64,000 nucleotides of DNA from Oculina patagonica. Lineage: Eukaryota. Of the stretch, positions 12,950-58,308 are shown one piece after another. Position 1 is the first letter of the stretch; each line of letters starts with the position of its first letter. The notes beneath the pieces are model-generated. The model had not been told where the DNA came from. It did not search any database and was given only the letters and a program-made list of their open reading frames with translations. The DNA lies in contig NC_135764.1 in NCBI RefSeq assembly GCF_052425735.1, forward strand, positions 10,664,001-10,728,000. The letters are read 5' to 3'. Position numbers and translations under genes: made by a program.

Positions 12950-15900
12950 GTAAGTGACCCTTTGTTTATCGCTGGCACAAGTATTTCTGTCTGAGTAGTT
13001 TATCAATATAATGGCGTAAATTACACACGCGCAAATGTCACTGGCTTTAGAAAACTTTATTCTGTCCTCGTAGATCTAAGCGTCGCATAAAATAAGCTAA
13101 AATATAATCAATACTTCGAGAAACCCGCCATGTTACATCTGGCTGTCAATTAGTGCAGCGGCTTTGTCTATCATTTCTAAAACGGGATTTAAATATGGCG
13201 GCTGTCGCTGTACCCTAGTCACAGAGGTTTTCTTTCCTTTCTTTTCATCACAAACGAATTTCAGCCGCGAAATGGCAAGAACCCACGGTTCGGCGAATTC
13301 TCCTTTCAGTTTAAGAAAATATCTGTGACCGTCGTGTTTCCGCTCTGTCGTGGCTTTCAAATTATAGGACTTTAAAAATAGTAGTGGTGCGTTTAAGAGA
13401 AGACTGAATCCGTGCTTTGAGAGAGATGAAAGAAAGATTTTTTTAATGAACTCGCCTGAGAAAACGGGACCTCACATGCATATTCTTAATTATTGTATGG
13501 CACGATCAGCGGCGTGTATTTACAGTATAAAATACGTAATCCAAAACACCAATGTCACTTTGGACTATGGGAAATGTAATTTCCACAAAGCATAAAACGT
13601 GTCCTGTTCATTAATTGTTGTCGCTGCATTTCTGATGCGTGAAAATCGATGCGTGAAAATCGATCGTGCTCTGCAGTAAATAATTAATTAACATAAATTA
13701 AACAGTCACGCTAGTTTTGGCCCGATTTTAGCAGTTCTGTAAAATACAAATAATTTTTCTTTTAATCGAACAGAACCTACAAAAACAGAAACGATTGAAA
13801 AACGTATACCACATGAAAAAACTGATAAGCCACATGGATGGCCGAAGTTATACAAAATTGTCGAAAGAGATTCGTCATCCACAGTTCGGCCAGTTTAATT
13901 TCGTGTGCGAACCACAGTAAACTGATCGTAAACAAGAATATCCGATTAAAATCTTAGTTTAATATTTTAAGATTCATTAAGCAGTTTTCATTTTCACTCT
14001 AAATTTAGCAACATTGAAAAGCGTTGTATTTTAAGACGTCACCACTTCAACACAAATGCGGTCACGCAATGTTGTGTGACGCGAGGTCATCCCAGCATGG
14101 GATTGAGAGTTGATATCAAGAGTTCTCAAATAAAACTTCTCTGGCATGGAAATTATGATTTTATAGCTTCGGGAAGGCTAAATGTAACTTTTTGTTATTT
14201 TTAATATTCTCTTGAACAGTCATTTCTCCTCTACGAAAAAAGGTCAAGGAGTTAATTAACCGGGTGGCCTGGTTCGAGCCCAGTTCTAAATGCTCGTGTT
14301 TGTTTTTGTAGTTGTTTGTTTGTTTTTTGTTTTGTCTTGTTTTGCTCTGTCTTGTTTTGGGCGGCCTTGGTTGACAAGTTGATCTGGAATATTAAAAATT
14401 AAAATATATTATCATTATCATTGTTATTGTCGTTGTTATTGTTATTTTAAAGCTGATTTCCAGTCCGTACTGCGCAGACTCGGGGTTTGTTTTCGTTTTT
14501 GTTTTGAATTCGTTGAAACGTTACACTTCGGTGACAGCATACATGAAGTTTTTTAGTCCGCCATTACAGTTCGTTTCGTTCAAGGATTTCCGATGAGCTA
14601 AAACGTCGGTTTGAAATAGCGTCAAGGTTCTTCTACTCGTTATTATTTGTTCTGCAAGAATATCTGGCGTTAATAATGAAGAAAAACGTAAGTTTGTCGT
14701 GGAATTTTTAGTTTTGCTTGTAAACATTCCTTCGTGGTGGGCTCGCATAAACATTGCAGCCGAGATTGCGCAGTACGGACTGGAATTCATCTTTAAGCTA
14801 TAAATTATACGGTGAAACTATGAATATATGAAATCATATATTTGAACTGCGGATGAAGAATAAATGAAGAGTTGATCTTCGCAGTCATGAACAGTTCTGT
14901 TCATAACAGCGAAGATCATCTTTTCATTTAAATTATACGGTGTTACATTTTTCCGACAGGTATTTTTTTGCGGGATGGCAGATGCCCAGCAGTTCAAAGG
15001 CGAACTGACTGTCCTACGTACGTGTGGGATGAGTGCACGTGCGACACTGATTGCGCTGGGAAGAAAAAGTGTTGTCTTGATGGATGCAGGCACGCATGTC
15101 TTGACCCAGGTAAATTACTGATGCTTTAAGCTTGGTTGTGCTCTGTGATACTCCCAAACATGTATTCATCAAGCATCTATTGGCCGTTCCGAGGATGCGC
15201 AGGGAACTGGGGCGAGTTTCGAATTTCAAGTAATCGATAATCTGACACCACCATATGAAAGATCGCGATGAGATTGGTGATTTGACTAAGTTTGATGCTT
15301 TCAGGATGCACAGAAACGAAGTTATGGACCTTGAAACATGGTTAAAAATCCATACAAACGTCTCTAATTGTAAGCCAGCGTCCCCCAAAACCATATAAAC
15401 TCTTAAAATTTTTATCTGTTTTGTGACAGCTGTAAAATCCTGCCAAAGACCCATTATTTGAAAGAAACTAAGTTGAAAATCACTATGTTTGCCCATAAGA
15501 TAAGATAAAAGATAAGAAACTTTATTTAAGTGTCAAAGCCATAGCCTGGAAAATAAAACCATACTAAGGGGACAAAACTAAAAGCACACAACTAATTAAA
15601 TACAATAAAAATATATATAGTTATAAAAATGTTATAATAATCTATGGTGTAGAGAGTATCACAAAAATCATAAAAAATTTTAAAAGAGTTTATATGGTTT
15701 TGGGGGACGCTGTCTCAAAATAAGAGACGTTTGTATGGAATTTTAACTATGTTTCAAGACCCATAACTTCATCTCTGTTCATCCCAAAAGCGTCTAACTT
15801 GGTCAAATGACCAATCTCACCGGGTTCTTTTATGTGGTGTGTCAGATTATCGATTACTTGAAATTTGAAACTCGCCCCAGTTTCCTGCGCAACCTCGGAA

Positions 15901-18900
15901 CGGCCAATTCTCCAACAAGCCCAAATTCTTCTCGTGAAAACCCATGAGTCTTCTCATCTCTCTTGTCTGCCTTGATGGCTTAGGAATGTTAACATTAACA
16001 TCCGAATTAAAGCCCTTATTAGCTTCCCTGAGCACTATTCCTACACAACAATAAGTTAAGAAAAGTGTGTATGGGCCTCAGGAATTTTAAGCAGATAATA
16101 TGATGCATTTTGATTGCCATTTACTACCTTTTTACCTTGTTGGAGACGCGGTGGCCTAATGATTAGCGCTCTGTACCTGTATTCCGGATCGAGCAATCCG
16201 GGTTTGAGCCCTGGCATGGGTCATTATGTTTTTGTTTTGGGGCAAGACCCAGTACTCTCATACTTCTTTTCGTCACCAAGATGTATAAATGGGTACCGGC
16301 GAACTTATGCTGGAGGGTGCGATGGACTAGGAGCGGGTAGAAATACCCATCAGGGGTACTAGGTGTAGAAATACTCCTAGGCTCCGGCGGAGTGGGCCAC
16401 TTCGCCTTATCTAACTTCCTTTGCATGGCTACTCTCTTAACTGTGTTGCTTTTCTGTGTTTTTGCCTTCCTCTCTTTTAAGACACGGGGACGCCCTCTGT
16501 CAGAAACAAAGCTGATGTGGTGTTCATAATGGACTCGTCTGGAAGCATCGGGCCGGAGGATTACAACCGCGAAAAGCAATTCGTCAAAGATCTCACGAAT
16601 GTGTTCACAATCTCCCCGACTGCGGCACGAGTCAGCACGATCATATACAGCGACGACCCGAAACTCATGTTCGACTTCGACACTTACAGTGACAAACAAA
16701 GCATTAACACTGCCATTGACAACCTAGAGTATTTAGGCAACAGGACACGAATCGACAAAGCATTGGCACTAGCGCTGGAGGTCTTCTCCAAATCCCGTCC
16801 GTCTGTACCCAGAATCGCCTTTGTCCTCACCGACGGAAAGCAGACAGAAGACTTCGACGCAAAACCGCTGGACGTAGCAGTCCGACCATTGCACGACCTG
16901 GGAGTTCAAGTTTACGTCATCGGGATAGGCATTTATATCGACATCAATGAGTTGTATCTTCTTACCAGGCGACGGCAGGATGTGTTCTTTGTGGACTCCT
17001 TTGAGAAGCTTTTGCAACAAACGTACCGCATTGTTAACCAAATTGATACGTACGGTGAGTTTGAGTGACTGAAGTGTTCTATTTAAGATTCTAGCCATCA
17101 TTATTTATCGTGTTCAACCCCAGGGAGGAAGGGGCACTCAAGAAAGATATACGGGAAGGCCCAGACAGAAAAAGGAATCCTTTCATGTATTTCCGAAGAA
17201 GATAGTAACCCTCAAACATACCTACGAAAGCAACGTTCTTAACGTTCACAATATTTTGAAAGTCTCTATGAGATACATAAATGGAATTTCTCCCCGCCCT
17301 TTTATATACATCACTCCCGGGATGAACCTTTAAGGGATGAAAATGGTTGAGATGGAGGATGAGGAAGGAAAGGGGAAACAACAAAGTGAGACAGGAAGAG
17401 AGGGACAAGAAAAAAGGAACACAATCAAAACACTGTCAGGAAAAGAAGAAAGGGCGCACGCAGGCAAGAGAACAACGCTATGCAGGCACCGAGTTGGATT
17501 ACCGAAAAAGTAGTATTCGCTGCGAATCCAAAGCAAGGTGAGAAGACGACAACCTCCACCAATCAACGAAGAACCTGATAGACGAATGGCGTGACAGTCG
17601 TTGAGGGGCGCACTCTGACGAACACGGACTACATCACACTGTGTGACCGATGACAGACAAGGGAGACGAGGGAAAATATATAGAAAGACCGGAAGGGAAA
17701 GAAAGTTATTCATTAGCGGGAGATTCCAGTTATCGAGGATTCCAGTTATCGAGGGTAAAATTACAGTAAATGTATAACGGAAATCCAGGGGAAATCGATT
17801 TTGGTTCAGTAGTCTGCTGTTTATAGACTGTTTACATCCTCTTTATTTTTAAACGCAAAAGAACGCGCGAGAGAGAACACAGCGAGCGAAGCAAGCGCGA
17901 TTGCAAAGCATAAGAGGGTGGGGCGGGGACCAAGCGTGCGCTGGCGTCCAGTTCTCTCGCCGCCGCTCTTTCCCCGGCGTTTAACGATCGAAGTAAAATT
18001 AAAAAAAAATAGAGGGCTGAGAAAAGTCTGGCTTGTTAAAGCAAGAAGGGACGCCGCCTTAAAATCTTTCCTCCACTTTTCGTCCATAGAAAAATGTTTG
18101 AAACGACCGTTCCATCAAAAAAAATATGCGAATATAAAACGGAAATTAATTGCAAAAGTTGAAATTCTCTCGAGCTTCCTTGAAGTTGAAATAAATCCGT
18201 TTTTCTCTGGGACTTAGTTCAACGCGGAAATTCTATTAAATTTAATCCATCCACGTATTTTCATTGATGCCATTGAGAATTTAGCCTTTAATCGAGATTT
18301 AAGCCGCGTCATTTTCGTTACTTGCGCCTTTGCTTTGAATTAAAAAAATAGAGAAGAGTACGAATGAAAACGTTAATTTCAATTTCAATTGAAAAACATC
18401 GTCTCGATACAAATTCCTCTATTTTGATCTTTGACGAGTACAATAACTTTACCCAGTCTCTATTCTCTTACCACAGATGCAATACCACCGCTGGAAATCG
18501 CAGCCGACATGTTGTTCCTGCTCGATTCTTCCTCAGCTATACCCCGAGAAAATTATGGAAAAGAACTAAGTTTCCTAAAAAAAGTCGTCGGGTTATTCAA
18601 CATATCTCCTCGCTACGTCCGAGCCGGCATAATTCCTTACGGAAACACCGCTGAGCTGTCTATACCACTTGGTAGAGATACAACAAACGAGGCAATCAAT
18701 CGGTCAATTGACTCACTTCCTTACATTGGCGGCAACAAGAGAATCGATCGTGCGCTAATGCTAGCTAACCAGACGTTTTCTCAAGCACGACCATTAGTCC
18801 CTAAGATTTTAGTCATTCACACTCACGGAGGACAGCTGACAGATCCTGGGACCGACTTAAGGCCTCCTATCCAGGCTCTTCGCGCTCAAGGTGTCAGCGT

Positions 18901-21900
18901 ATTCGTAATTCCAATTGGAGAGGGTGTGGATTATTCAAGGCTAAATCAGATTGACGGAAGGAACGATATCATTGCAGACAAGTCTCACGAGTCACTGGAG
19001 CCGTACCTTCCGCCTGCAGCTAGTTATATAAGAGTGAAATCAGGTGAGGTCGATATGGCAGTTATTTACTGAACAGTCAGTAAATAACATCAAAACTTAT
19101 CTCTAGGGATAAACTTAATATGAGCATTAACATAGCTGCTTTTCTTAATTTAGAGACCAAAAGGATGAAAGCTGTTGAGATCGATAAATTAAGATCAGAA
19201 CAGAACATGACGTTATGCACTTTGTATTTATTTACCCCACTGCTTTTCTTCAAAAAATGGAATTACTTTTATGGTCGCTATTTTTGGAGGGTCGTTACTT
19301 TCGGAAGGTTGCAGCTGAACCGTAAGACCCGTGCCCTGCATCTTCACTGTTACGATCAGAAGGGGACTTTAAATAACCCACCACTTATCGCAAAGTGTGA
19401 GCCATGAAGTTCCCGGTGTTGTGGTCTGATCTCGCCTATTGTACTGTCAAGTGTGGGGTGGGAAATTCTCGGAGATATTAGCTAAGGGCGCTTTCCATTA
19501 GACAAAAGTGGCTGGCCGGCTGGCCGGTGAATCTGAATGGAATATAGGCTCACAACAACAGTGAAATATTTATATATTGACTGATTTCACAGGACAAGTC
19601 TGACTAGCAACGGAATTCAGTTCTCGAAAGTAGCTGACCAACCGGTCAGTTCTGACTAATAGAAAGCGCCCAAATAAAGTGTTCATATCATATCATTCAT
19701 ATACAAAACAATCGTTAAAATAGATTGCTACTCTGGGGATTCGTTACCTCGGCTGAACTTTACGGTGAGTCGCTTTTTCATGTCTAAAGGTTACCATTTT
19801 GTTTTAATTTGACAGACTTTTCAACTCCTTTGAGTAAAGACGCTGCCGTTGTCTTCCTGATAGACTCCTCTGAGGAAGTAGAGTCGAACGACTTCAAGAG
19901 ACAGAGAGAGTTTGTGGTATCCTTAGCAAAAGCCTTTAAGATTTCTGAAAATGGAGTTCGCGGAAGTGTTATTACATACGGCAAATACGCCCGGCCAAGT
20001 GCGCAATTCAAAGACTCTACAAATTTTGATGAATTTCTGGAAGCAACAGTAAGAACCAGCCGAATAAAAGGACCAAGGAGGATGGACACGGCGTTGCAAA
20101 TGGCTGTCCGCATGTTCAGAGATCACGAAAAACCTGCACCAAGAGCAGTCATATTATTCACGTCAGGGCCACAAAAAACCGATCTTGACCAACTAGAAGA
20201 AGCTAGGAAAAAGCTCGAAAAATTGGGCGCGCGAATCTACGTCATTGCCATTGGCCCTTCAGTTGTCTACCTTGACGTTGCGAGACTGGTGAACAGTTCT
20301 AGCGATGTCATACAGGTTCCTTCGTTTATCGATTTACAGTCTGAGATTCATGCAGTTGGGAGGCACGTGAGCCTAAGACAAGGTAAGCAACGTAGATTAG
20401 TCTATGTTATGGACATGTTAAACGAGGCAATTTCCTTCGCGACATTCTCGTCACCAGAGCCGCTCGTCCCTCTCAGCCGGCAAAGCCTGGGGCACGGGGG
20501 AACAAGTTCCTCTGGGGCCACATGATTTGTTTGGCTAGGTCTTTAACAAAGGACATTTAAATTTAGCAAATCAAATCAACCGTTCCAAAATCCTTTTGTT
20601 GTGAGTGATTTTACTACGGTTGATTTGATTGGCTAGATTTAAATTCTAATTGTTAAAAATCTATCAAAAATGAAACCATGTGTCCCCATAGCCACTTGTT
20701 CCTTGAGCCCCAGACTCATCCGGCCAAAAGGGACAAGCTGGTCTGGGGACAAGAATGGACATGAAACGAAACAAACACTGCATTGACATTTGCAAAAAAA
20801 ATTCACGTGTAACACTTCATGTTTGCAACCTGCAATGCAACATTTCGTGTTGGAAATTGCAAGACAAGTAGAACTATTCAGGACAAGTTACTGCCTGTTA
20901 CACCTGTCCTGTTGGCCTTAATTTTTGTTCTTTTTTCACTAGGTCACCTTAATTAGTGACTGCATGAGTTGTAATATCAGCAACATTGACCGTTTTTTAT
21001 TTACGCTTTGCGAAATATGGGTATTTTTTGTTGCTGACACTGAATTACTCCTAATTTCTATATTTTGACGGTAGCGATTCCCAATAAAAGAGCCAGCGTC
21101 ATTAAACAACTAAATAGATAATTACACTATCGCCAAGCATGTATAGCTTTTGAGATCACCAGCAAAATGAATGAGTTTTTCCCAAACTCACAGTAGCGTT
21201 TTGATGACAGCATAATAGTCTATATAGTCTATATTGCTTTTTTGGTAGTTTTGCATGCTTTACAATTTTTATTGTGTAGGATTTGCAAAATAGCAAACAC
21301 GAAGAAGGCTTCGCCCGACACCCAGTCTCCAGTTTGTTCTCTAATCTGTATCAAAATGTTAGATTTCTACAACATCGTCTTTATATACTTTTTTTTTGTT
21401 TTTTTTATTTAACCCTCAGGAGATACAGCGACCCTTTTTATAGCCGATGTTGTGTTCCTAATGGATTCGTCCGTGGGTGTTGGCAGTGCAAACTACAGAA
21501 GGCAGAAGGATTTCGTCAAAGCTGTCGCACGGGCCTTGAACTTCGGAGAGCGAGCCACCAGGGCCTCACTAGTAGTCTACAGCAGTAACCCGAGGCTGAT
21601 AACCAGATTCGACAGCCACACGACCCTGAGGCAGTTCGAAGCCGCCGTGGACAGGGCGTCTTATTTACGCGGCACGCGGCGTATCGACAAAGCACTGGCA
21701 TACGCAGCTCGAATGTTTACCGCAGCAAGATCGGGTGTTCCTAAAGTTATGGTGCTCATTACATCCGGGAGACGAGATTCCGTCAATCCTCTTGACGTTG
21801 CTAGTATACCGCTAAAGAATATTGGCGCGAAGTCATTCATCGTCGCCATTGGTTCTTTACCAGACATAAGAGCCTTGCGGTTGATTGTCAGCGGGAATAA

Positions 21901-24900
21901 AGACATCTTTAGAGTGCCGTCTTTCCTCAGTCTTTCTCAAATAGAAAAATCGTTTCCGCAGTACATAATCTCTTCATTTGGTAAGTGAGAAAGGTAATTT
22001 AACTAAATTTAATTTAATTTTGAATTTAAAGGATCAAAGATCGGGGCAATATGAAATTGCTTTGCCATTTAGAATTGTTATGTTGTGGCCGTTTAATTCT
22101 CTACCGATCAAAACCTAGTTTCCCCAGGGTCAGACAGGCAGGTTACGGCAAAACAGAAAAGGGGATATTGTCTCAATGTATCAACAAATTCTTTAAACTT
22201 AAAGTGAAAGAAATTAATGTTTTCCTTCGAGAAGAATTAAAACTTTGAGCGCGAGTAAACACATGGTCAGTTTTTTATAAAACACAAGGATCGAGGAAAC
22301 TGTTGAACGTATAATAACTCAGTCATGAGCTAAATGGGTTTTCATATTTGTTTCATAGACTCCACCGTACCCACTACAAAGCCAACGCCGACTACAGGTA
22401 TAACGCCCTCTACAGGTACAGAGTCCCCTACAGGTACCGCGTCCCCTGTAAGGACAACAAACGTAAACGCAGACATCATTTTCCTGATGGATTCATCTCA
22501 AACTGTCACACCAGAAGCTTATCGGAAGGAGAAATCTTTCATCAAGGAAATGGCTAGACACTTAAACGTGTCCCCTGGCCAATCACGCGCTGCCCTGATC
22601 ACTTACGGTTCCACGGCTTCAACAGTCGATACTTTTGGAAATACGCGATTTGATGAGTCGGTTGACCGGGCTCGATCCATGTCTGGTGCTCGAAGAATAG
22701 ACCAAGCCCTGCTAGAGGCAGTACAACTGCTTTCCTCTGCTCGACCATCTGTTCCTAAACTGGTGGTACTGTTAACGGCGGGAAACCAGCAGTCAGGCGC
22801 ACAGTCTCCAGAGTATGCTGCCAGACGGATCCAGTCTCGTGGCGGGAAATCTTTTGTTGTTATGGTTGGCCGTGAGCCCGATGAAAATGAGTTTTATAAA
22901 ATAGTAGAGAAACCTTCAGATGCGTTCAGAGTTCCTTCATTTGATGGGATCCAACCATATGCTGCTCCGTTGTCAAAAGGAATTGAGGAAAGCCTAAAGG
23001 AAGGTTAGTTAGGGGAGAAATGAACCAGACTATGCTTTCATAACGTAACTGAGAACTTCGTGGTGAAAAGGCTTATTTTGTAATGTTTATTTATAGTTGA
23101 AGTTAAGTTGTATTTAACGCACGCTGTCAATGGTTGTTTTTTGGTTACGTTGCCATGACCATGTATCCTGCAGTGGGAACCATTCAGCTTGGGTGGGTCT
23201 AATACTTGTCCTTTTTATTTGTAAATTTGTTGCTATATATCTAAGCACTTTATCACTGGTTCATTTTGAATATAGTTAGTTTTGTATTTAGGTCTCCGGA
23301 GTCTTCCTCTACCATATTTCAGTTAATATCATGCCATAACCACTTACTGGGGAGTATCCGCTTCAACTCAAAGTGTTCTCTTCATTATGTTAAATGATAT
23401 TCAAAGCTTTCTTGATCGCAAACCAAAAAAATTAAGAGGACACTTTTCCAATCAGAAAATAATGGGTGATGACCAAAGCCACTTAGAATACCGCGTTTAT
23501 TACTTCGAGTAAAGGAACAACATCCACAAGGAGGACAATTAGGTGCAATTCCTAAGGCAAAACGTTCCACTATACTTAAAATATAGGGATGTACCATGTC
23601 GCCAACAGGTTGTTGTATTACTCTTATTGCAGGCCCTGAAGCCTCAGACATCATTGCGGATGTAGTATTTGTAATGGATTCTTCTTTCACCGTGCCTCGC
23701 GACGACTACAGGAAGGAGAAGGAGTTTGTCAAGTATCTCGCCAGATATCTCAACGTTTCACCGGGGAATTCTCGCGCAGCGCTTATTACCTACGGCAACA
23801 GGGCGGCTGAGGTGGTAGGCTTCGACATCAAACGGTCTGTGTCAGACTTCGAGACTGCTGTAGACAAAGCTCCATTTGTTAGCGGTGACAGACGCATCGA
23901 TCGATCTCTTGACAAGACCTCTCAAATAATGGCCAACGCCAGGCAATCGGCGACGAAGATAGTCGTGTTGTTGACCTCCGGAAAACAAGCCTCGGCGTTC
24001 GGCAGCAAGACTCCTGGTGAAGCGGCAATTCCTCTTCGAGAAGGCGAAGTTTACAGCTATGTTGTAGCAATAGGTCAAGAACCTGACATCTCGGAACTTC
24101 GTCCTGTGGTGCAAGAATCATCGCATATTTTCAGAATGGCTACGTTTGGTGATTTAGAGCCTCGCCGGACGACGGTTGGTCAGATCATTGTCGAAACATC
24201 GAGTAAGTTCTGTCAGTATATTTCTGCGCTGGTTTTCAATGGCCATAAACAAAAGCATAAGGAATGTACAAGCATAAGCATGATCACGAGCATAAGAATA
24301 AGCATAAGCATGCATACCCTGGGTGCCAGAGGGTTTTTACATTTTGTAGGAAAAACAAATAGTTCATTATATAAACATCAGTGAAATACCAGGAAATCTT
24401 TCGCACGAAAAAATCATATCTTCACACGTGAAAATAACATGTTTTATTTTTTTCCAAGAGGGCACGGTAACGAATCCTGCAATCTGATTGGTTATTAGCG
24501 CGGGCAAGATTCTCCTATCTCTGCCCACGGGCCACGGTAACGCTTTCGTGAGTTTCATTTCGCGGCGAGACGAACGAACCCATGACAGTTTTGCTCTCCA
24601 AAATGATTTAAATCGATGTAGTTGCTCACCAACCGTTGTAAATGTGAAAGGGAAAATTAGCAGTGGAATTAAAGGCCTTGAAGTTTTCCAAAAGGCGAGT
24701 ATTTATTCTCTTTAGTGACAAAATGAAGTTATAGTTTTATGGCCGTGGTTTGCCGATCGTTGTTTGTGCATTCGCACTGATTTTCACGCCATTGCGGTTA
24801 ACTGCAAGTCGCCGGTTTACAGACTCGATTTATCCTTTCAAACACCTTGCTTCTCTGCTACTTTTCTCCAAAACCGAATACTGCTTATCGCCATTCAAGA

Positions 24901-50815: not shown

Positions 50816-53800
50816 AAAATCCGCGCGAGGCCAATTGTAATTACGAGCACGATTAGTCTCTTTATTACACATTGTAGTCACTAGCTGTCTTCTCATTGGT
50901 TAAAGGGGCTACGTCACGAGGTTTTAGTATATTTTTTTTCCAAACTCTTCTGTAATTGGTGGGAGGCAATTTTACCCATGGAAATATTTTTCTTTGAATA
51001 TATAAAAGAAGATACAAAAGTATTTTTTTGTGAGGGATCAAATCACGCCGAAAATTTTTTTTTTTTTTAAGCCCCCCCCANNNNNNNNNNNNNNNNNNNN
51101 NNNNNNNNNNNNNNNNNNNNNNNNNNNNNNNNNNNNNNNNNNNNNNNNNNNNNNNNNNNNNNNNNNNNNNNNNNNNNNNNNNNNNNNNNNNNNNNNNNNN
51201 NNNNNNNNNNNNNNNNNNNNNNNNNNNNNNNNNNNNNNNNNNNNNNNNNNNACAAAACTTCCACTTTTTTTCCCCCCCACCAAATAATTAAATAAACTAA
51301 AATTTTTTTTTTTTCAAAAACCACCCCAAATATGAATTGTACTACACGAGGTCCAATTACTAATTAATGGTATGAATATCAAAATACGAGGTTAGGAAGT
51401 CTTTGAGAACCTTTTTTTGTGAGAAAAAGCGAAAGGTAGATTCAATTGCTTGTACAAAAAGTAGGGAAACAGCAAAACAAAAACATTCAAATGCGCGAGA
51501 TTGACGCGCGAATGGCGTAGGTGTCCAATTTCAAGTATCCAATTTGAAGTTGCTCTAATTGGATACCTGTAATTGGACACCCACGTGATCGCGCACCGAT
51601 TACGCGACAATAATTATTAGGCGCGCGCAGAACCAATCAAAATCGAGAATTTTGTTATAGATACGATTATAAATTATATACCTTTCTTAATTCTGTAATA
51701 AGCCAATTCAATTGCATAAGTGGTTTTGTGCAGGACTAATGCATTCTTTGTCGTGATCAATATACGAAAAGGTGGTGTCGCTTTTTCCTAGTGATACTGA
51801 GTCAGTTGTATAATATCTTCTAGTAATGGTTTGAAGTAAACTTTAGATGATTCCGGTTTAAATTTTACCTTCCATTTTTTTAGATTCTAAACCTGCGGAT
51901 AAAGATCAAGTAAACGTCATATTCCTACTGGATACTTCCACGGGCGTCACTCGTAGCGATTTTGGAAAACAAAAAGACTTCGTCAAGGCCATGACTCGGT
52001 CATTTCAACTCCCCCTTAGTGAATCAAAGATGGCTGCTGTTCCATACGGTGCTTTTACTGCGACATCAGGAAAATTGAATACGTACCAGTCCCTGAATGA
52101 ATTTGACAGGGATGTTGATGCAGTACAACTAATAAGTGGGCAAAGGAGGATGGATGAAGCCTTGAACGCTGCCAGCAATGTGCTTCGACAAGACAGGTCA
52201 CCGGTCCGTAATATTGTCATTCTGCTGACTGCCGGAAGACAAGCTCGGCTGTATCAAGGCCAACCTGTGAGGGATTCCAGCAAGGACGTCAGGGACGTCG
52301 GCGCCGAAATCTATGTCGTGACAATTGGCAGTGAACCGAGTCTTGACGAGCTTAGGCCCATTACTGCAAATCCAGAAGACATTTACCAAGTTGGCTCCTT
52401 CGATTATCTTCAGCGTGAAGCGCAGCCCATTGGACATGATATTATTAACAGTAAGTGGCACAGACGTTTTCAATGTGTTTTATTGATCCTTCCCTATTAA
52501 CTTAAATTCCCCCTTCAAAGTCTTTTTACAAGTGAACATGGGTATTTTACAGACGAATGGTCGTTTTTGTTGTTATTGTTTGTTTGTTTGGGTTGAGCAT
52601 TTTAAAATTCTCGTCTTCCGGAATTCCTGTTTTATGCAACAGCTGGCTAATTCCCCAATTTTGGGCTAACCATTAGTAATTGTTTTTTCTAGTTGTTGTT
52701 GTTATTGTTACCGGTTTTTAGTTGTACATCTTTATTATTTGGTGAAACTTGATTATTCACATTTATGTCTTATCAGATACCGGACGCCTGTCACTTACGC
52801 AACACAAGTAAAATGGCCCAGCTCACAACGAGTTCGTAGCTCAATTGGTTAGAGCAACCAACCTGTGTGTTTGAGGCCTTGGGTTACGATTTCCGTCGGG
52901 GACTCAGAATTTTTCTTTGTCCCAACAATTGTGTCAATATATACTTCATCTTCAATAGATAATCAATCTAAAATGGACAAGTAAAAAGAAATGCTGTACG
53001 GGAAAGACGGGAAACAAATCCTGGTTAAAGGGCGTTTAAAATATTTATTGTTACTATAAATGAGAAAAAAATTGTTGGTAACATCTGGCAAATGTTTATT
53101 TTTTATTCTATATTTTTGTCATTAGGTGGTGCATACAGACCGTTTGACGTAACTGCTGACATTGTCTTCATGGTAGACTCTTCGGGCTTAGTCGGGAACG
53201 AAAATTATCAAAAAGAGAAGGAGCTCGTTAAATCCTTAGCACGACTTGTTAATGTCACTTCTGAAAAATCAAGAGTAGCTGTCATTGCGTACAGCAGATC
53301 ACCCATCCTTGTTGTACGATTTGATGGTTACAATTCATTAGGCGAGTTTGACAAGAAAGTGGAAGAGATGCCCTTGCTTGGAGGTTCGTCGAGGCGCATG
53401 GATATTGCCTTGCAGACCGCTGCTCAAGTATTAAACACTGCTAGACAACATGTTCCAAAGATCGCAGTCTTGCTGACGGCAGGAAGGCAAATACCTGGTG
53501 GGATTTCACTCAGCACTGCCACCCAACAGCTTCGAAGTTTAAATGCTACTACCCTGGTGGTAGCTATAGGACAACAATACGATAAACAAGAACTGAGCAC
53601 TATTGTTACTGAGCAAGAAGACTTATTCGAAATACCTTCTTTCAATGCGCTAGCGTCACGTGCTAGGACGATTGGACAAGCAATAGAGGAGAAGTCAGGT
53701 AACGTATGTACATTAATCGTGCAAAAGACTAAGTTTTTGTAAAACCACGCCACAGTTTTAAAATACTTCTCAAAAGAGCATGATGCCGGCTGATCTTTTG

Positions 53801-56800
53801 GAAATCAACCGAATGTTTTATCCGTATGTTGGTTTTCAAACATAAAAGATTACTAGTGTGGTAAATGCTGGACATAAATTGGTGTCCAATTTTAAAACTA
53901 TTATCTAGCACAGACCAGGCCCACAAATTAGTGTAAAATCAGTCAAAGGCTAGTCAGTTAGAAAAGAGCTTCTTTATCTCAGCTTCCGATTTTTGACGGA
54001 TTTACAGGTTTAGTTATAGAAAAGTCCATTGATTTGAGTTTATTTGTTTCATTGCTTGAAGCTGGTAACGTAGTTGTTTATTTGTTTTTCTTCTGAAGCT
54101 CCAAAACCAGAGGACATAATAGCCGATGTTGTTTTCTTGGTTGACTCCTCCAGTAATGTGACATCACTCAACTTCCAGTTGGAAAAGAAGTTTGTGAAGG
54201 CCATGGCCAGGTCTTTAAACGTGTCTCCTGACAAGTCTAGAGCGTCTGTCATTTTGTACGGGTCCAAGCATAACGTCGTGCTGTCACTGGGAGAGGCTAC
54301 CGACTTGGATGGTTTCAACCGTGCTGTAGACAGTGCAAGTTATGTCGATGGACCGCGTAGAATGGACTTAGCTTTGGAGGCAGCAGCAGCCGTAATGAAC
54401 CAGGCAACGAGGAATGTTCCAAAGATTGTGATCCTTTTGACATCTGGGAAACAGTCGCCTACTAATACACCATTCCCATTGAGTAGTGCTGTGAAGCCGT
54501 TACGTGATCTCGGAGCTCAGACTTACGTCGTTGCTATCAGCGGTGAGCCAGATAAGCAAGAACTCGTTACTGTGGTGGATGACCGAAAGGACATATTTGA
54601 AGTGCCACAGTTTGAAGAATTATTGCCGCAAGCAACGCAGATCGCAAAATCAATTGCCGGAAGATCAGGTAAGGTTTCTGGTATTAACTCATTTTAAGAT
54701 ATTTCTTGATATTGCTCTTAGCATTTTACACCAGGTCCACAAACCTCGTCAAAAGTGTTTGCATGATCACCAAATTTCTCTCTCCCTCTCCTCCCTCCTC
54801 CCCGTGTCAATACTGAGCTCTCAAACATATTGCACAAAACAATCCCTATCCACGAGGGGTCCAACATTTTAAAGGGGAGGAGAACCTGCAAGAACGTTTG
54901 TATGCGACGTTGACCAAGTTTAAGTGTAAAGTATCTTTGTTCGCGTCGTTTAATGGTGTGCGATCTAGCTACTTTTTTCTACGCTTGAATGTTCTCAAGG
55001 CTCTTCGAATGTTCTTTCATCTAAAAGATGCAAAAATCAGAAGCGCTTAATTTCGCAGGATATACAAGATAACAACATACACTTCTTATTTAGTTCAAAC
55101 TTAAATAATTTTGCGGAAAATTATTAACCATTGATTGACGTCCTAAATGAATAATCTTTACTTGTTCAGTTGCACGCTCGCCGAAACTTCTTTTCCATCC
55201 CGCAGATCAACAGCCGCTAGACATAGACGCTGACATTGTGTTCCTGATAGACGCTTCTAGCTTCGTAACTCGGGACAACTTAATTAAAGAGAAGGACTTT
55301 GTCAAGTCCCTGGCCAAGTTCCTGAATATGGCGCCTGAAGCCTCAAGAGCTGCTCTGGTTCTCTTTGGCACCTTGCCTAATACGGAGATAAAATTCAATG
55401 ACTACCGTACTTTACGTGACTTTAATGACCGTGTTGACCTGGCCCGGGCACTTGGTGGTTTCCGGCGAATGGATCGTGCTTTAGACGAGGCCGCTAATGT
55501 ACTAGCTGACAAAAGGCGGGGCGTGCCACATATTGTTGTGCTTGTTACATCGGGAAAACAATCACGAAGTGAAGACGGCATTCCGCTTGATGACGCGCTC
55601 GATCCTTTAGAAAAACTAGGAGCTTATACTTTCGTTGTTGCTATTGGACATGATCCGGATACTTCGACACATGTGCTATCTGTACCCTCCTTTGATTGAC
55701 CTTCCATCTCGAGTTTACGGCATGGCAAAGCAAATCAAGAGCACTAGTGGTATGTACAGAGACATTTTGTTAGTAAATAACATGCAGTCGTGTTTGTGGC
55801 TGGATTCTTGTTTGTTTCGAAAACCGAACAGTTTAAGGAGTTCAGTTCAACTAACTCTGTGAGCTTTCTAAAGCTCCTTAAAAGGAACAGGCTATGTCCA
55901 GGAGCAAATACCAGTAAATATTACAATTTCAGTTCTTCTGTCAGTTATTACTTTTTTTGTAATTTTTATCTTTATTATTCGCCAGCAAACTTTTGTTTTG
56001 ACCTTTAAACCTTCCTCTACCATCTTTTTTTTCTACCTTTAAACCTTATTTGAATAATTTACCACAAGTAGATATAGATAAAAATCCTAATAACCATTTT
56101 TAAAAAGTTAGTAATGAAACTCTGTTTTCCAGGTTTGATAAGGTAAAGGTGGTGAAAAACGAGGACACAATGTTCCGAATACATTGATACGAACAAAAAT
56201 GTTTTCCCGTTTGCCTGCACTAGCAACATTTGTCGCGGACACAAAATTTGTCTCCTAGACACATCATCCGATTTCCGTCAGAAACACTTTGTGTCCACAA
56301 CAAATGTTTCCCCGTTTGCGCGGCATGGACACAAAACATTTGTTTTGTGTACCGCTCGTTTAATCACCCAAGAAACATCATGAGCAACAACGTATCGGCA
56401 ACAATGTGTTCTCTTTTGCCACCACCTTAAAGTGCGGCTTAAAAAACATTAATGATACTTTTCTCCACTACCCCGGCCTTAAAATGTCTTGATTTTTGTT
56501 TCACGTTTTTTGCTTTTTTTTGTGGAGGAAAGGGTCATTGGGTTTGTTGGTCGATTCTCGCTTGTCAGTGGGCACTTTCAAAGGTCAACATTTGTCACGT
56601 TAATTTGTCACCTTTAAAATAATCCCAATACTTACAACCACCCGGATTTGTCGGGTAAAGAATATTAACCAAAAACAAATCTTTTTCCGTGCATTCGTAT
56701 TAGCGGTTTTGTAAACGAGTACTTTTCTTTACTGGTACCATTTTTCTTACAATGTGAAAATGCTTCCACTTTTATCTATTTTTTCAGAGCCAAAACCAGC

Positions 56801-58308
56801 AAACATCACAGCTGACATTATATTCCTTATGGATTCTTCAACCTCTGTTGGACGAGAAGGCTTTGGCAAGGAAAAGAGTTTTGTGAAATCTTTGGCAAAG
56901 TATTTCAACGTCTCACCAGGGAAATCCAGAGCTGCTGTTGTCTCGTACAGCAGTTTTGCTCGCACTGTTCTTAAGTTCACTGACTACCAATCCGAAACCG
57001 ATTATAATGACAAGCTTGATAAGGAGCCATGGGTCGGAGGCAGCCGACGTATAGATCGTGCTCTTGAGGCGGCAGATACGTTACTGAGCCAAGCGCGTTC
57101 AAAGGTTCCGAAAATCGTTGTCCTAGTCACAGCCGGAAGACAAACGACCAGTGTTGGTGCTACCCCATTGGGAATAGCTGCCCAACCACTCAAAGATATT
57201 GGAGCTAAGACCATTGTTATAACGGTTGGAAGCGAAGCAGATCACAGAAATCTGCTTCCGGTGGTGGACAGTATGAACGACATATTTGGTGCACCTCTAT
57301 TTGATGACCTTCGCTATGAGGTGCAGCCAGTCGTTAAATACACTGTTGAACATTTTGGTGAGTTGAACGAAACATGATCACTGATATCAATAGCATTAGG
57401 TTTGTAATGCGGAGTTACAAGTATTTTGTCGTGATAGAGAGGAAGGGCACTGTACCGAACCTCGAAGAACACGATTACTGTCATTTTCACCCCGAGGAAT
57501 CAGCCGAACCACCTAAGCCAACACAGCGTTGGAAAAGCCTTTTTTTTTATAGTTTTCACACCTGTTAATGAGATTTGTTTTTATTCAAATGCAACCGGCA
57601 AAGAGTTATAACTACACCTTTGGTCGACGTTTTGTCATCTAAATTAACACAAAATCGTCAAAAAGGGTTACCATTTTTCAATGGTATGCGTAATATGATT
57701 TATTTCTTATGTTAATGTCTTCTGTTTTTCTGTTTAAGAATCGCCGATTCACAATATCACTTCAGAAGTGGTCTTCATTTTGGACGCTTCAACACCGGTT
57801 GGAAAACAAAACTTTGACAAAGAAAAGGCATTTGTCAAACTCTTGGCCAGGTCTCTAAACGTCTCTCCTGGAAACTCAAGAGCAGCTATTATAACATACA
57901 GCACGAACCCATTCACGGTCATACCGCTGGGCGGATACAGCACTGTTCAAGAATTTGAGCGAATCTTAGATGCCATAGAGGTCTATGGAGGCGATAGGAG
58001 AATGGATCGAGCGTTGAAAGAGGCGGTCGGTTTGTTTCAGAAAGCAAGACCTGGTGTTGATAGAAAGGTCATCCTGCTGACCGCTGGGAACCAGAACGTG
58101 GGCGACGATGAAGAACCTTTAGATAAAATAAAGAAAATGCTCCTTGATGTTGGTGCTCTGCCGTTCATCGTTGCCATAGGGGAAGACCATGACATTCCAA
58201 CACTCACAACAGCTGTTGAAGACCCGAAAGACATTTTTGAAGTTCCATCATTCGATGACTTGCTGTCTCAAGTTTCGTCAACAGCCGCAGTAGTTGCGAA
58301 CAGAACAA
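12877..58308 (+). CDS. Gene B (spliced, 3'-partial): giant secreted protein, signal peptide-WAP-(VWA)x28+, about 5,400 aa seen
   Basis: 32 exons joined by GT-AG introns with compatible phases; apparent frameshifts in the VWA22 and VWA26 exons; the last exon ends in a donor, so the gene continues. Confidence 0.82.
14451..14792. mobile_element. TTAA-flanked MITE, copy 2 (inverted relative to copy 1, internally deleted)
   Basis: Same TIRs and internal sequence as 9204-9660 in reverse; TTAA on both sides. Confidence 0.85.
14815..14928. mobile_element. Short hairpin-containing insertion with 14-bp TSD
   Basis: taaattatacggtg at 14801-14814 and 14929-14942; internal palindrome atgaagagttgatcttcgc...gcgaagatcatcttttcat. 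Confidence 0.72.
14960..15109 (+). CDS. Gene B exon: WAP domain, 9 Cys (not in ORF track)
   Basis: ccgacag| ... G|gtaaat, 150 nt; DGRCPAVQRRTDCPTYVWDECTCDTDCAGKKKCCLDGCRHACLDP. Confidence 0.9.
15179..15908. mobile_element. Foldback/MITE with ~240-bp inverted arms
   Basis: 15179-15416 is the reverse complement of ~15670-15908. Confidence 0.8.
16141..16400 (+). mobile_element. tRNA-derived SINE; related reverse copies at ~7215-7490 and ~30160-30375
   Basis: A-box-like gtggcctaatga and B-box-like gggtttgagccc, followed by shared body (ttggggcaagac...ctctca). Confidence 0.6.
16482..17054 (+). CDS. Gene B VWA1 (intact MIDAS)
   Basis: phase 1-1; DSSGS, NRTRID, LTDG. Confidence 0.92.
17824..18030. 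mobile_element. MITE
   Basis: tagactgtttacatcctctttattttt / aaaaatagagggctgagaaaagtctg. Confidence 0.5.
18477..19043 (+). CDS. Gene B VWA2
   Basis: ccacag| ... G|gtgagg; degenerate MIDAS. Confidence 0.9.
19486..19671. mobile_element. PIF/Harbinger-like MITE
   Basis: TIR gggcgctttccattag / ctaatagaaagcgccc; TAA on the left. Confidence 0.6.
19816..20382 (+). CDS. Gene B VWA3
   Basis: tgacag| ... G|gtaagc. Confidence 0.9.
20443..20757. mobile_element. MITE
   Basis: TIR cattctcgtcaccaga / tctggggacaagaatg with further internal symmetry. Confidence 0.6.
21420..21980 (+). CDS. Gene B VWA4
   Basis: cctcag| ... G|gtaagt. Confidence 0.9.
22359..23003 (+). CDS. Gene B T/P linker + VWA5
   Basis: tcatag| ... 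G|gttagt; STVPTTKPTPTTGITPSTG linker. Confidence 0.9.
23633..24202 (+). CDS. Gene B VWA6
   Basis: ttgcag| ... A|gtaagt. Confidence 0.9.
24365..26066 (-). mobile_element. Terminal-hairpin non-autonomous element (hairpin 25914-26066), interrupted by another
   Basis: Long palindrome; IR attatataaac (24366-24376) / gtttatataat (25901-25911); internal ttcggaaa tandem repeats. Confidence 0.72.
24442..25618 (-). mobile_element. Terminal-hairpin non-autonomous element (hairpin 25461-25616)
   Basis: Long palindrome; perfect 13-bp IR 24443-24455 / 25449-25461. Confidence 0.75.
26786..27361 (+). CDS. Gene B VWA7
   Basis: ttttag| ... G|gtaact. Confidence 0.9.
28012..28590 (+). CDS. Gene B VWA8
   Basis: cctaag| ... 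G|gtacca. Confidence 0.87.
29004..29258 (+). CDS. Gene B VWA9 N-half
   Basis: atttag| ... G|gtaaga (internal phase-1 intron). Confidence 0.88.
29653..29961 (+). CDS. Gene B VWA9 C-half
   Basis: atgtag| GSRRIDKAL ... G|gtgaga. Confidence 0.88.
30501..30533. repeat. (TGT)n microsatellite
   Basis: Direct reading. Confidence 0.95.
30591..30958 (+). CDS. Gene B VWA10 N-part
   Basis: tcctag| ... GAG|gtaaga (phase 0). Confidence 0.88.
31459..31669 (+). CDS. Gene B VWA10 C-part
   Basis: tcacag|GAA ... G|gtaaga. Confidence 0.88.
32422..32973 (+). CDS. Gene B VWA11
   Basis: ttttag| ... C|gtaagt. Confidence 0.9.
33329..33883 (+). CDS. Gene B VWA12
   Basis: ttttag| ... G|gtgaga. Confidence 0.9.
34113..34191. 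repeat. (CAGA)n microsatellite
   Basis: Direct reading. Confidence 0.95.
34486..35067 (+). CDS. Gene B VWA13
   Basis: ttccag| ... G|gtgcgt. Confidence 0.9.
35390..37250 (-). mobile_element. 5'-truncated L1/Tx1-type LINE (RT C-terminus + zinc knuckle, frameshifted) with 14-bp TSD
   Basis: Protein similar to the C-half of ORF2 at 59177; -1 frameshift near 35958; short A-tail; flanks gccccgcaacgtat (35376-35389) and gccccgcaaggtat (37251-37264). Confidence 0.9.
37746..38291 (+). CDS. Gene B VWA14
   Basis: ctgcag| ... G|gtaagt. Confidence 0.9.
39181..39798. repeat. ~210-bp inverted repeat (foldback DNA-transposon remnant)
   Basis: ttttaatttttttacccgtcacttagtcacaacggttaccatagc... and its reverse complement ending at 39798. 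Confidence 0.8.
39937..40515 (+). CDS. Gene B VWA15
   Basis: caatag| ... G|gtaagt. Confidence 0.9.
40881..41186 (+). mobile_element. Terminal-hairpin element Y (hairpin 40884-40994)
   Basis: Palindrome with GCGAAGC tip; IR 40996-41014 / 41167-41186. Confidence 0.75.
41187..41719 (+). mobile_element. Terminal-hairpin element X', complete copy (hairpin 41191-41374)
   Basis: Palindrome with GCGAAGC tip; IR 41377-41400 / 41696-41719. Confidence 0.8.
42695..43261 (+). CDS. Gene B VWA16 (alternative in-frame acceptor at 42707)
   Basis: tccaag| or taacag| ... G|gtttgt. Confidence 0.85.
43688..44251 (+). CDS. Gene B VWA17
   Basis: tcgcag| ... G|gtttgt. Confidence 0.9.
44669..45232 (+). CDS. Gene B VWA18
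   Basis: aatcag| ... A|gtaggt. Confidence 0.88.
45863..46432 (+). CDS. Gene B VWA19
   Basis: ttgcag| ... G|gtgaga. Confidence 0.9.
47371..47937 (+). CDS. Gene B VWA20
   Basis: ttgcag| ... G|gtacgt. Confidence 0.9.
48434..49012 (+). CDS. Gene B VWA21
   Basis: attcag| ... G|gtgagt. Confidence 0.9.
49062..49440. repeat. Degenerate ~137-bp inverted repeat with a hammerhead-like motif in each arm
   Basis: 49062-49198 is the reverse complement of 49304-49440; motifs CTGACGA-A-GGCT..AGCC-aAAA-CGTC (-) and CTcATGA-A-GGCT..AGCC-GAAA-CGTC (+). Confidence 0.75.
50005..50581 (+). CDS. Gene B VWA22, with +1 frameshift near 50490-50492
   Basis: 577 nt (3n+1); the domain continues in another frame (KKPEDVLKVSKFDDL...NKTG); splice sites intact. 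Confidence 0.75.
50759..51670 (+). mobile_element. Degenerate terminal-hairpin element, interrupted and spanning the gap
   Basis: tagtaattggacc...gtacaattca pairs with tgaattgtac...ggtccaattacta (51333-51362); distal ccaatcaaaatcg motif. Confidence 0.5.
51081..51251. other. Assembly gap (171 N) with homopolymer-rich, low-quality-looking flanks
   Basis: N run. Confidence 1.
51884..52450 (+). CDS. Gene B VWA23
   Basis: ttttag| DSKPADKDQVNVIFLLDTSTG ... A|gtaagt. Confidence 0.9.
52830..52955 (+). mobile_element. tRNA-derived SINE remnant
   Basis: tagctcaattggttagagc ... gggttacgatttcc; no complete cloverleaf. Confidence 0.55.
53126..53698 (+). CDS. Gene B VWA24
   Basis: cattag| ... G|gtaacg. 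Confidence 0.9.
54099..54668 (+). CDS. Gene B VWA25 (alternative in-frame acceptor at 54111)
   Basis: ctgaag| ... G|gtaagg. Confidence 0.85.
55206..55749 (+). CDS. Gene B VWA26, with a ~9-codon deletion and +1 frameshift/stop at 55697
   Basis: 544 nt (3n+1); PDTS-THVLSVPSFD* then DLPSRVYGMAKQIKSTSG in the next frame; splice sites intact. Confidence 0.7.
56147..56427. mobile_element. MITE (TAA-flanked, Harbinger-like)
   Basis: aggtggtgaaaaacgaggacacaatgt / acaatgtgttctcttttgccaccacct; TAA on both sides. Confidence 0.6.
56788..57357 (+). CDS. Gene B VWA27
   Basis: tttcag| ... G|gtgagt. Confidence 0.9.
57739..58308 (+). CDS. Gene B VWA28
   Basis: tttaag| ... A|gtaagt. Confidence 0.9.

Follow-up and report, generated by a model that had tools for sequence, protein, structure and literature searches.

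A run of 33 coral VWA domains with a conserved arginine at the altered metal site, between end domains that keep a MIDAS

The stretch of DNA described here, a window of 64,000 nucleotides from the coral Oculina patagonica (contig NC_135764.1; chromosome C7:10664001-10728000), carries the larger part of a gene, here called gene B, that is built of von Willebrand factor A (VWA) exons in tandem. A hidden Markov model (HMM) made from the window's own domains and run over all six frames placed 28 VWA units (B01-B28) at 16487-58313 and four further ones (A1-A4) at 769-7784, all of them on the plus strand, the only strand on which such units were found. The six domains that were compared with the Pfam VWA family (PF00092, gathering cut-off 23.8 bits) matched it with E values between 1e-24 and 1e-33, or 85-117 bits. 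The locus is animal DNA with introns and open reading frames (ORFs) of the long interspersed nuclear element (LINE) type, and each unit is a single exon except for B09 and B10, each of which is interrupted by an extra intron. Since every unit has its AG acceptor two bases 5' of the frame and its GT donor one base 3' of it, all VWA exons are of phase 1-1, and their lengths are divisible by three, with the exception of the frameshifted B22 and B26, which are one base over.

The state of the MIDAS, an adhesion site that depends on metal ions, in these domains can be followed in three short motifs, namely the D-x-S-x-S loop, the Thr site and the Asp of TDG. In our alignment A1-A4 and B01 are canonical, reading DSS[GER]S, xTRID and TDG. 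B02-B28 depart from this in the manner that a preliminary description of the same DNA had reported: 27/27 domains keep both the first Asp and the third-position Ser, the fifth-position Ser is lost in all but B27, the Asp of TDG is replaced throughout (by Ala in 18, Ser in seven, His in B02 and Gly in B14), and the Thr position is taken by Arg in 25 of the 27, by Lys in B02 and by Ala in B21. Off-pattern motifs around this last site occur in B08 (RRLR), B10 (RRVD), B12 (RNIA) and B21 (ARLD). The second position of D-x-S is Thr in B08 and B23 and Ala in B26 and B28, and Thr takes the fifth position in B05, B06 and B17, a detail absent from the preliminary description.

That description gave gene B the same number of VWA units, 28, and had counted 27 consecutive variants, from the acceptor of B02 (18477) to the donor of B28 (58308). 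The run is real, but it is cut by the edge of the window, and the DNA fetched downstream holds six more variant exons, B29-B34 (RRID or RRMD, with TTG, TGG or TAG), followed by three near-canonical domains and a stop. As such, there are 33 consecutive variants, B02-B34, with MIDAS-type domains at both sides, and the run reads better as a single ancestral change that tandem exon duplication has multiplied than as 27 events. Over the full run the Thr site is Arg in 31/33, with one Lys and one Ala, and is in no case Thr or Ser; the Asp site is Ala in 20, Ser in seven, Thr in three, Gly in two and His in one, and in no case Asp. No domain of the run departs from the first Asp or the third-position Ser (33/33), while the complete D-x-S-x-S loop is found in A1-A4, B01, B35 and B37 and, among the variants, in B27 only. 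Most canonical domains of the locus hold one or two cysteines, as a terminal disulfide requires, whereas none of the 33 variants contains any. The median isoelectric point (pI) is 8.05 in the variants and 5.3 in the canonical domains.

In gene B a WAP exon is followed by VWA exons only, up to the stop codon, and its product is predicted to be a very large secreted matrix protein with one WAP and about 37 VWA domains. Tandem N-terminal VWA domains that mostly lack a MIDAS are a property of collagen VI that gene B shares. However, no Gly-X-Y run of at least five triplets was found in any frame of the window or of 60 kb of flanking DNA, and because no such helix precedes the stop after B37, an identity as a collagen VI alpha chain was rejected. 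The features of gene B are collected in Table 1.

Table 1. Features of gene B, with the residues at the three MIDAS motifs of each VWA domain (positions are those of the window)
Feature	Type	Coordinates	Strand	Loop	Thr site (codon position) and motif	Asp site	Remarks
WAP	four-disulfide core exon	14932..15126	+				5' of first VWA; Pfam PF00095, E 3.4e-10
B01	canonical	16482..17054	+	DSSGS	RTRID	TDG	Pfam VWA, E 1.2e-33
B02	variant	18477..19043	+	DSSSA	Lys (18737)	THG	
B03	variant	19816..20382	+	DSSEE	Arg (20076) RRMD	TSG	
B04	variant	21420..21980	+	DSSVG	Arg (21677) RRID	TSG	
B05	variant	22359..23003	+	DSSQT	Arg (22691) RRID	TAG	
B06	variant	23633..24202	+	DSSFT	Arg (23890) RRID	TSG	
B07	variant	26786..27361	+	DSSYD	Arg (27049) RRID	TAG	acceptor approximate
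B08	variant	28012..28590	+	DTSSF	Arg (28278) RRLR	TSG	
B09	variant	29004..29961	+	DSSAE	Arg (29658) RRID	TAG	exons 29004-29258 and 29653-29961
B10	variant	30591..31669	+	DSSSD	Arg (30854) RRVD	TAG	exons 30591-30958 and 31459-31669
B11	variant	32422..32973	+	DSSSE	Arg (32670) RRID	TSG	
B12	variant	33329..33883	+	DSSVD	Arg (33589) RNIA	TAG	
B13	variant	34453..35067	+	DSSFD	Arg (34755) RRID	TAG	domain chosen for modelling
B14	variant	37746..38291	+	DSSSQ	Arg (38003) RRMD	TGG	
B15	variant	39937..40515	+	DSSNE	Arg (40209) RRMD	TAG	
B16	variant	42697..43261	+	DSSSA	Arg (42958) RRID	TAG	start is HMM match start
B17	variant	43688..44251	+	DSSLT	Arg (43948) RRID	TAG	
B18	variant	44669..45232	+	DSSSD	Arg (44923) RRID	TAG	
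B19	variant	45863..46432	+	DSSRG	Arg (46129) RRID	TAG	
B20	variant	47358..47937	+	DSSFG	Arg (47637) RRMD	TAG	start is HMM match start
B21	variant	48446..49012	+	DSSSL	Ala (48700) ARLD	TAT	
B22	variant	50005..50581	+	DSSSE	Arg (50274) RRMD	TAG	frameshifted, 577 nt
Gap	assembly gap (N)	51081..51251	.				inside B22-B23 intron, between donor 50581 and acceptor 51884
B23	variant	51884..52450	+	DTSTG	Arg (52144) RRMD	TAG	
B24	variant	53126..53698	+	DSSGL	Arg (53392) RRMD	TAG	
B25	variant	54099..54668	+	DSSSN	Arg (54356) RRMD	TSG	
B26	variant	55206..55749	+	DASSF	Arg (55463) RRMD	TSG	short in-frame deletion near C-terminus
B27	variant	56788..57357	+	DSSTS	Arg (57045) RRID	TAG	sole variant with full DxSxS
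B28	variant	57739..58308	+	DASTP	Arg (57996) RRMD	TAG	donor leads to exons past window
B35	MIDAS partly kept	downstream of window		DSSQS	PKRLD	TDG	
B36	near-canonical	downstream of window		DSSAY		VEG	
B37	near-canonical	downstream of window		DASGS	RSRID	SDG	followed by stop

The variant domains have a mean identity of 36% to one another (range 23-50%), and within this diverged set the Arg column is 94% conserved and belongs to the ten best of about 190 alignment columns. Over B02-B34 all six Arg codons are in use (AGA 9, CGA 8, AGG 7, CGG 4, CGC 2 and CGT 1), and the first Asp is written as GAC in 17 domains and GAT in 14. Together with the orthologous domains in another coral and in Nematostella and with the Arg of a jellyfish protein, these figures uphold the earlier suggestion of a conserved substitution rather than decay, and they show that the Arg is under selection, purifying selection having held it since the tandem duplication.

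The survey of relatives draws on Nematostella, a jellyfish (Sanderia) and a second coral assembly. When a profile of 23 variant domains was compared with 1.84 billion proteins, the top match by far was the Nematostella protein XP_048579525.1 (P0001), which is annotated as 'collagen alpha-3(VI) chain isoform X4'. Like gene B it has an N-terminal WAP domain (residues 62-106), canonical VWA domains at its ends (1 and 18) and no collagen helix, and its inner domains, 2-17, combine DxSxx with a lost Asp and a Thr site that is Arg in 15/16 and Lys in the remaining one. It differs in having 18 VWA domains against about 37, the inner arrays having expanded separately, and in the greater divergence of its inner domains, where Val often stands in place of the Thr ahead of the lost Asp and no acidic residue is found at the fifth position. 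In a tree of the domains from which the MIDAS columns were left out, coral and Nematostella domains pair by position (B01/Nvec01, B03/Nvec03, B36/Nvec17 and B37/Nvec18, with Shimodaira-Hasegawa-like approximate likelihood-ratio supports of 99, 93, 97 and 93, respectively), and B02 clusters with Nematostella domain 2, both carrying Lys at the Thr site. The inner domains do not resolve one-to-one against Nematostella, and the tree requires two changes of Asp state. On the strength of this tree we regard gene B and XP_048579525.1 as orthologues and the variant as older than the split of corals and sea anemones. In the other coral assembly, a 21 kb locus (L038) runs collinear with B09-B20, its domains being 52-62% identical to them, compared to 43-50% to the next-best domain. 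Ten of its domains are collinear one-to-one, for instance with B11 (L038:10034, 58%), B12 (L038:10583), B13 (L038:11611) and B20 (L038:18303, 62%); the split of B09 is also present, and 14/15 readable sites carry the Arg. The jellyfish protein has repeats of the form GGTRRM...TNG. Word-based homologue searches returned only Nematostella paralogues and vertebrate COL6A3 with P0001, and only four short ENA fragments with P0079.

The Nematostella isoforms X2 (P0165) and X4 (P0001) lie 186 residues apart (3720 vs 3534), which is the size of one VWA exon. This, along with the symmetric exons of the array, suggests cassette skipping of the phase 1-1 exons and a rod of tunable length. In the Nematostella matrisome, NV2.11346 is recorded as a WAP/vWFA protein and NV2.8635 as a poly-vWFA one (PMC12549020), and XP_048579525.1 probably belongs among the core-matrisome proteins of these two types in that study.

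An AlphaFold2 model of B13, computed with an alignment, predicts with a high score (pLDDT, the predicted local distance difference test, 95.7; predicted template modelling (TM) score 0.92) a Rossmann-like alpha/beta VWA fold with six strands and the expected helices. D18 lies at the end of beta1, R89 in the loop before helix 91-102 and A118 after beta4, an arrangement that in the model is that of a MIDAS. The MIDAS residues D140, S142, S144, T209 and D242 of integrin alphaM correspond to D18, S20, position 22, R89 and A118 of B13. With the alpha I domain of this integrin (1IDO/1JLM), which serves as the reference MIDAS, the coral domains have the fold in common, and B01 and A1-A4 keep its full motif including the Gly-Arg-Thr context, whereas in B02-B34 two of the three direct metal-coordinating residues (the fifth-position Ser and the Thr) as well as the Asp are replaced. 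Loss of MIDAS residues abolishes metal binding, as is known from mutagenesis of integrin I domains. Because three of the five are gone, metal binding is expected to be lost in the variants, and we consider it very likely that B02-B34 constitute a conserved, metal-free bead subtype.

The solved folds closest to B13 are those of collagen VI alpha3 N5 (4ihk/4igi, TM 0.84) and VWF A3, with TM scores of 0.84-0.88 to solved VWA domains in general, and the best sequence match in the PDB is 9han_C, again of collagen VI. A3 of VWF keeps all MIDAS residues and yet binds no metal. Like the coral domains, A1 and A3 of VWF are metal-free VWA folds (TM 0.85-0.88 to B13), but each of them is a lone domain that a terminal disulfide closes, while the coral beads have no cysteine. 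The N10-N1 array of vertebrate collagen VI alpha3 (N5: 4IGI/4IHK, PMC3919171) resembles gene B in being a series of tandem one-exon beads mostly without a MIDAS (DGSxx, TAG or TGG). Collagen VI alpha3 does, however, have a Gly-X-Y helix and C-terminal domains and has no WAP; its Thr site varies between Leu, Pro, Thr and Arg, where that of the coral is fixed as Arg, and the context there is xNTG instead of RRID. Most VWA domains of collagen VI lack a conserved MIDAS and their arrays form beads on a string (PMC3919171). Therefore, of the earlier proposal that the coral domains define a metal-independent VWA subfamily, the metal-free part is carried by the lost residues and by nearest folds that are themselves metal-free, but 'defining' was too strong a word, since MIDAS-less arrays had already been described for collagen VI (PMC3919171), and Arg at this position also occurs in vertebrate collagen VI domains. 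The coral array is a refinement of a known theme and not a new principle.

How far does the arginine extend beyond this family? Among 657 domains less than 70% identical to each other, taken from the 150 best multi-VWA proteins, Arg stands at the Thr site in 50/242 domains that have lost the Asp and in 9/415 that have kept it (raw counts). It is the commonest residue at this site among the MIDAS-less domains of these proteins, and outside the cnidarian family it is second to Thr (32/223). Neither the size of the residue at the lost-Asp site nor the retention of the first Asp differed between MIDAS-less domains with Arg and those without it. In COL6A3 from gar and other fish, C1, C2 and an N3-like domain carry Arg at the Thr site, and two vertebrate COL6A4-like domains nearly match the variant motif, namely domain 3 of P0017 (GLRRIG...TAG) and domain 3 of P0090 (GSRRTG...TSG). 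The variant motif may be older than Cnidaria, or convergent with the vertebrate COL6A4-like chains. In the papers searched we found no description of Arg at the Thr position of the MIDAS; papers on collagen VI structure report the MIDAS as absent, or as present in alpha1 C2.

On balance, we lean towards a reading of gene B in which the end domains keep their MIDAS and the 33 inner beads derive from one ancestor that had lost its metal site. B01 and B37, and in part B35, retain the site, so the ends of the protein would presumably bind ligands via metal. The ancestor of B02-B34, predating the split of corals and sea anemones, would have lost the fifth-position Ser, exchanged Thr for Arg and Asp for a small residue, and then multiplied by tandem exon duplication. 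By analogy with the N-terminal array of collagen VI alpha3, the cysteine-free and mildly basic inner beads may form a rod or spacer of tunable length. So what would be the role of the arginine? Its guanidinium could replace both the lost cation and the charge of that cation: where two Asp faced an ion of charge 2+, one Asp would now face an Arg of charge 1+, and the pocket would stay neutral. That the Arg indeed sits in the former cation pocket we regard as plausible but tentative, with the case for and against not far from evenly balanced.

Several observations weigh against this picture. On phylogenetically independent pairs, the association of Arg gain with Asp loss is not significant (4.2 vs 1.3 pairs, median p 0.375). 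With or without Arg, about 92-96% of MIDAS-less domains keep the first Asp and the third-position Ser, and as the first Asp is still there in 92% of those without Arg, its retention provides no evidence for a salt bridge. Other MIDAS-less VWA domains carry Leu, Pro, Ala or Ser at the Thr site, so that Arg is not required for a metal-free fold. Furthermore, a second Arg just after the site is conserved, as is the Asp three residues on (RRID), the latter in canonical domains too, and the Arg may instead pair with this Asp or face the solvent. Finally, the fifth position is Asp or Glu in 13/33 variant domains, which might in principle aid the binding of a cation.

If the Arg does face outwards, it could be a ligand residue exposed on the former MIDAS face, where it would bind carboxylate or sulfate groups, such as those of acidic matrix proteins and sulfated glycans, without metal, making the array a polyvalent adhesin. 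The strict conservation of the Arg together with its neighbouring Arg fits this idea, as does the shift from an acidic pI of 5.3 to a basic one in the variants, reaching 9.4 in Nematostella, and in the model the site lies on the top face. In integrin I domains that is the ligand face. Yet the net charge is only about +1 per coral domain, the second Arg is equally conserved in the canonical, metal-binding domains, no ligand is known, and known metal-free VWA domains, VWF A3 for one, contact their ligands through a different face (PMC3919171). An exposed ligand residue is the main rival, though we hold it to be rather unlikely, and a shade less likely still is its more specific form, an arginine-dependent adhesion site in which the guanidinium takes the place of Mg2+ and clamps an acidic group of the ligand. 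Should the latter be true, 33 beads would make up a metal-independent polyvalent adhesin between two metal-dependent ends, and the same solution would have arisen, or been kept, in vertebrate collagen VI (C1, C2, N3-like and COL6A4-like domains). The dibasic RR was also considered as a processing site, which is unlikely, the loop being confidently folded in the model and the canonical domains holding R-T-R there.

Two further explanations concern the loss itself. The inner domains might have kept divalent-cation binding at a rebuilt site consisting of the first Asp, the third-position Ser, the acidic fifth position and the Thr before the lost Asp, and it is true that this Thr, like the Asp and Ser, is invariant. 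However, the acidic fifth position is missing from the Nematostella variants, the positive charge of Arg or Lys, one of which 32/33 domains have at the Thr site, would repel a metal, and metal-free VWA domains in general conserve the Asp, Ser and Thr, the nearest folds being of that metal-free kind; such a site is improbable. More improbable still is a passive origin, in which the shared Arg reflects descent from a decayed domain, through recent copying or through homogenisation by gene conversion, in the absence of selection. The 33 domains are indeed tandem exon duplicates of one type that cluster apart from the canonical ones, but their low mutual identity, the use of all six Arg codons, the rank of the Arg column, the collinear one-to-one orthologues in L038 and the pairing with Nematostella at the array ends exclude recent copying or conversion as the source of the shared Arg.

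The preferred reading, that of metal-binding ends around inner beads of a single metal-site-less origin, bears on a wider question. Among animal adhesion modules the VWA domain is one of the commonest, and the loss of the MIDAS in many matrix VWA domains is poorly understood. Gene B offers a natural comparison inside one polypeptide, between metal-binding ends and 33 diverged inner domains with a shared change at three sites. It also corrects an annotation, as cnidarian 'collagen alpha-3(VI)' proteins of this group are without a collagen helix.

As for the integrity of the gene model, the assembly gap has no VWA-like coding on either flank even at E<=1 in the HMM scan, the flanks being of low complexity. 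Because the exons of B22 and B23 are both of phase 1-1, the gap has no bearing on the reading frame; a whole exon may lie hidden in it, if its size is underestimated, but this would alter only the number of domains. In B22 the assembly shows a frameshift of one base at about 50490-50496, the exon length being one past a multiple of three. B26 has one too, and here the base at 55696 is missing from all transcript contigs of three public runs (X1, X2 and X7), the type of which we took to be RNA; the transcripts of B26 are thus in frame, and the extra base is an assembly error or a private allele. In the stretch B23-B28 the contigs cover exons and not introns, with GT..AG joints at the predicted sites (52450>53126, 53698>54099, 54668>55206 and 55749>56788), which shows that the transcripts are spliced. 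The two joints of B25, 53698>54099 and 54668>55206, are seen in three runs, and a loose contig end at 57357, in B27, continues into the start of B28. Two intronic stretches, 52745-52933 and 56147-56524, reach a contig depth of up to about 2400, with numerous loose ends in every run; both are repeats, either abundant or expressed at other places in the genome.

Around gene B, some 250 kb of C7 (10605836-10853096) hold dozens of VWA exons that belong to several genes in tandem. Two small contigs, C1837 and C1697, produce hits with scores identical to those of this locus and look like uncollapsed haplotigs. Upstream lies a paralogous gene with variant VWA exons (GARRID/AGG, GGRRNIE/TYG and others; L007:8232-9870 and L006:5761-7493), and its order, a variant core followed by the canonical A1-A3 (769-4641 of the window), is as in gene B. 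The domains A1-A4 had been assigned to a single 'gene A'; they are canonical as described, but as the variant exons upstream run into A1-A3, they probably belong to two genes, with A1-A3 ending the upstream one and a WAP domain with A4 standing separately. A Thr/Pro-rich, mucin-like linker at 3280-3480 shares its open frame with A3, just 5' of that domain. Two minus-strand ORFs lie in introns of gene B: one of 465 aa with a zf-RVT domain between B13 and B14 (35953-37350), and a LINE-type ORF of 1229 aa with endonuclease, reverse transcriptase and zf-RVT domains in the intron 3' of B28 (59177-62866).

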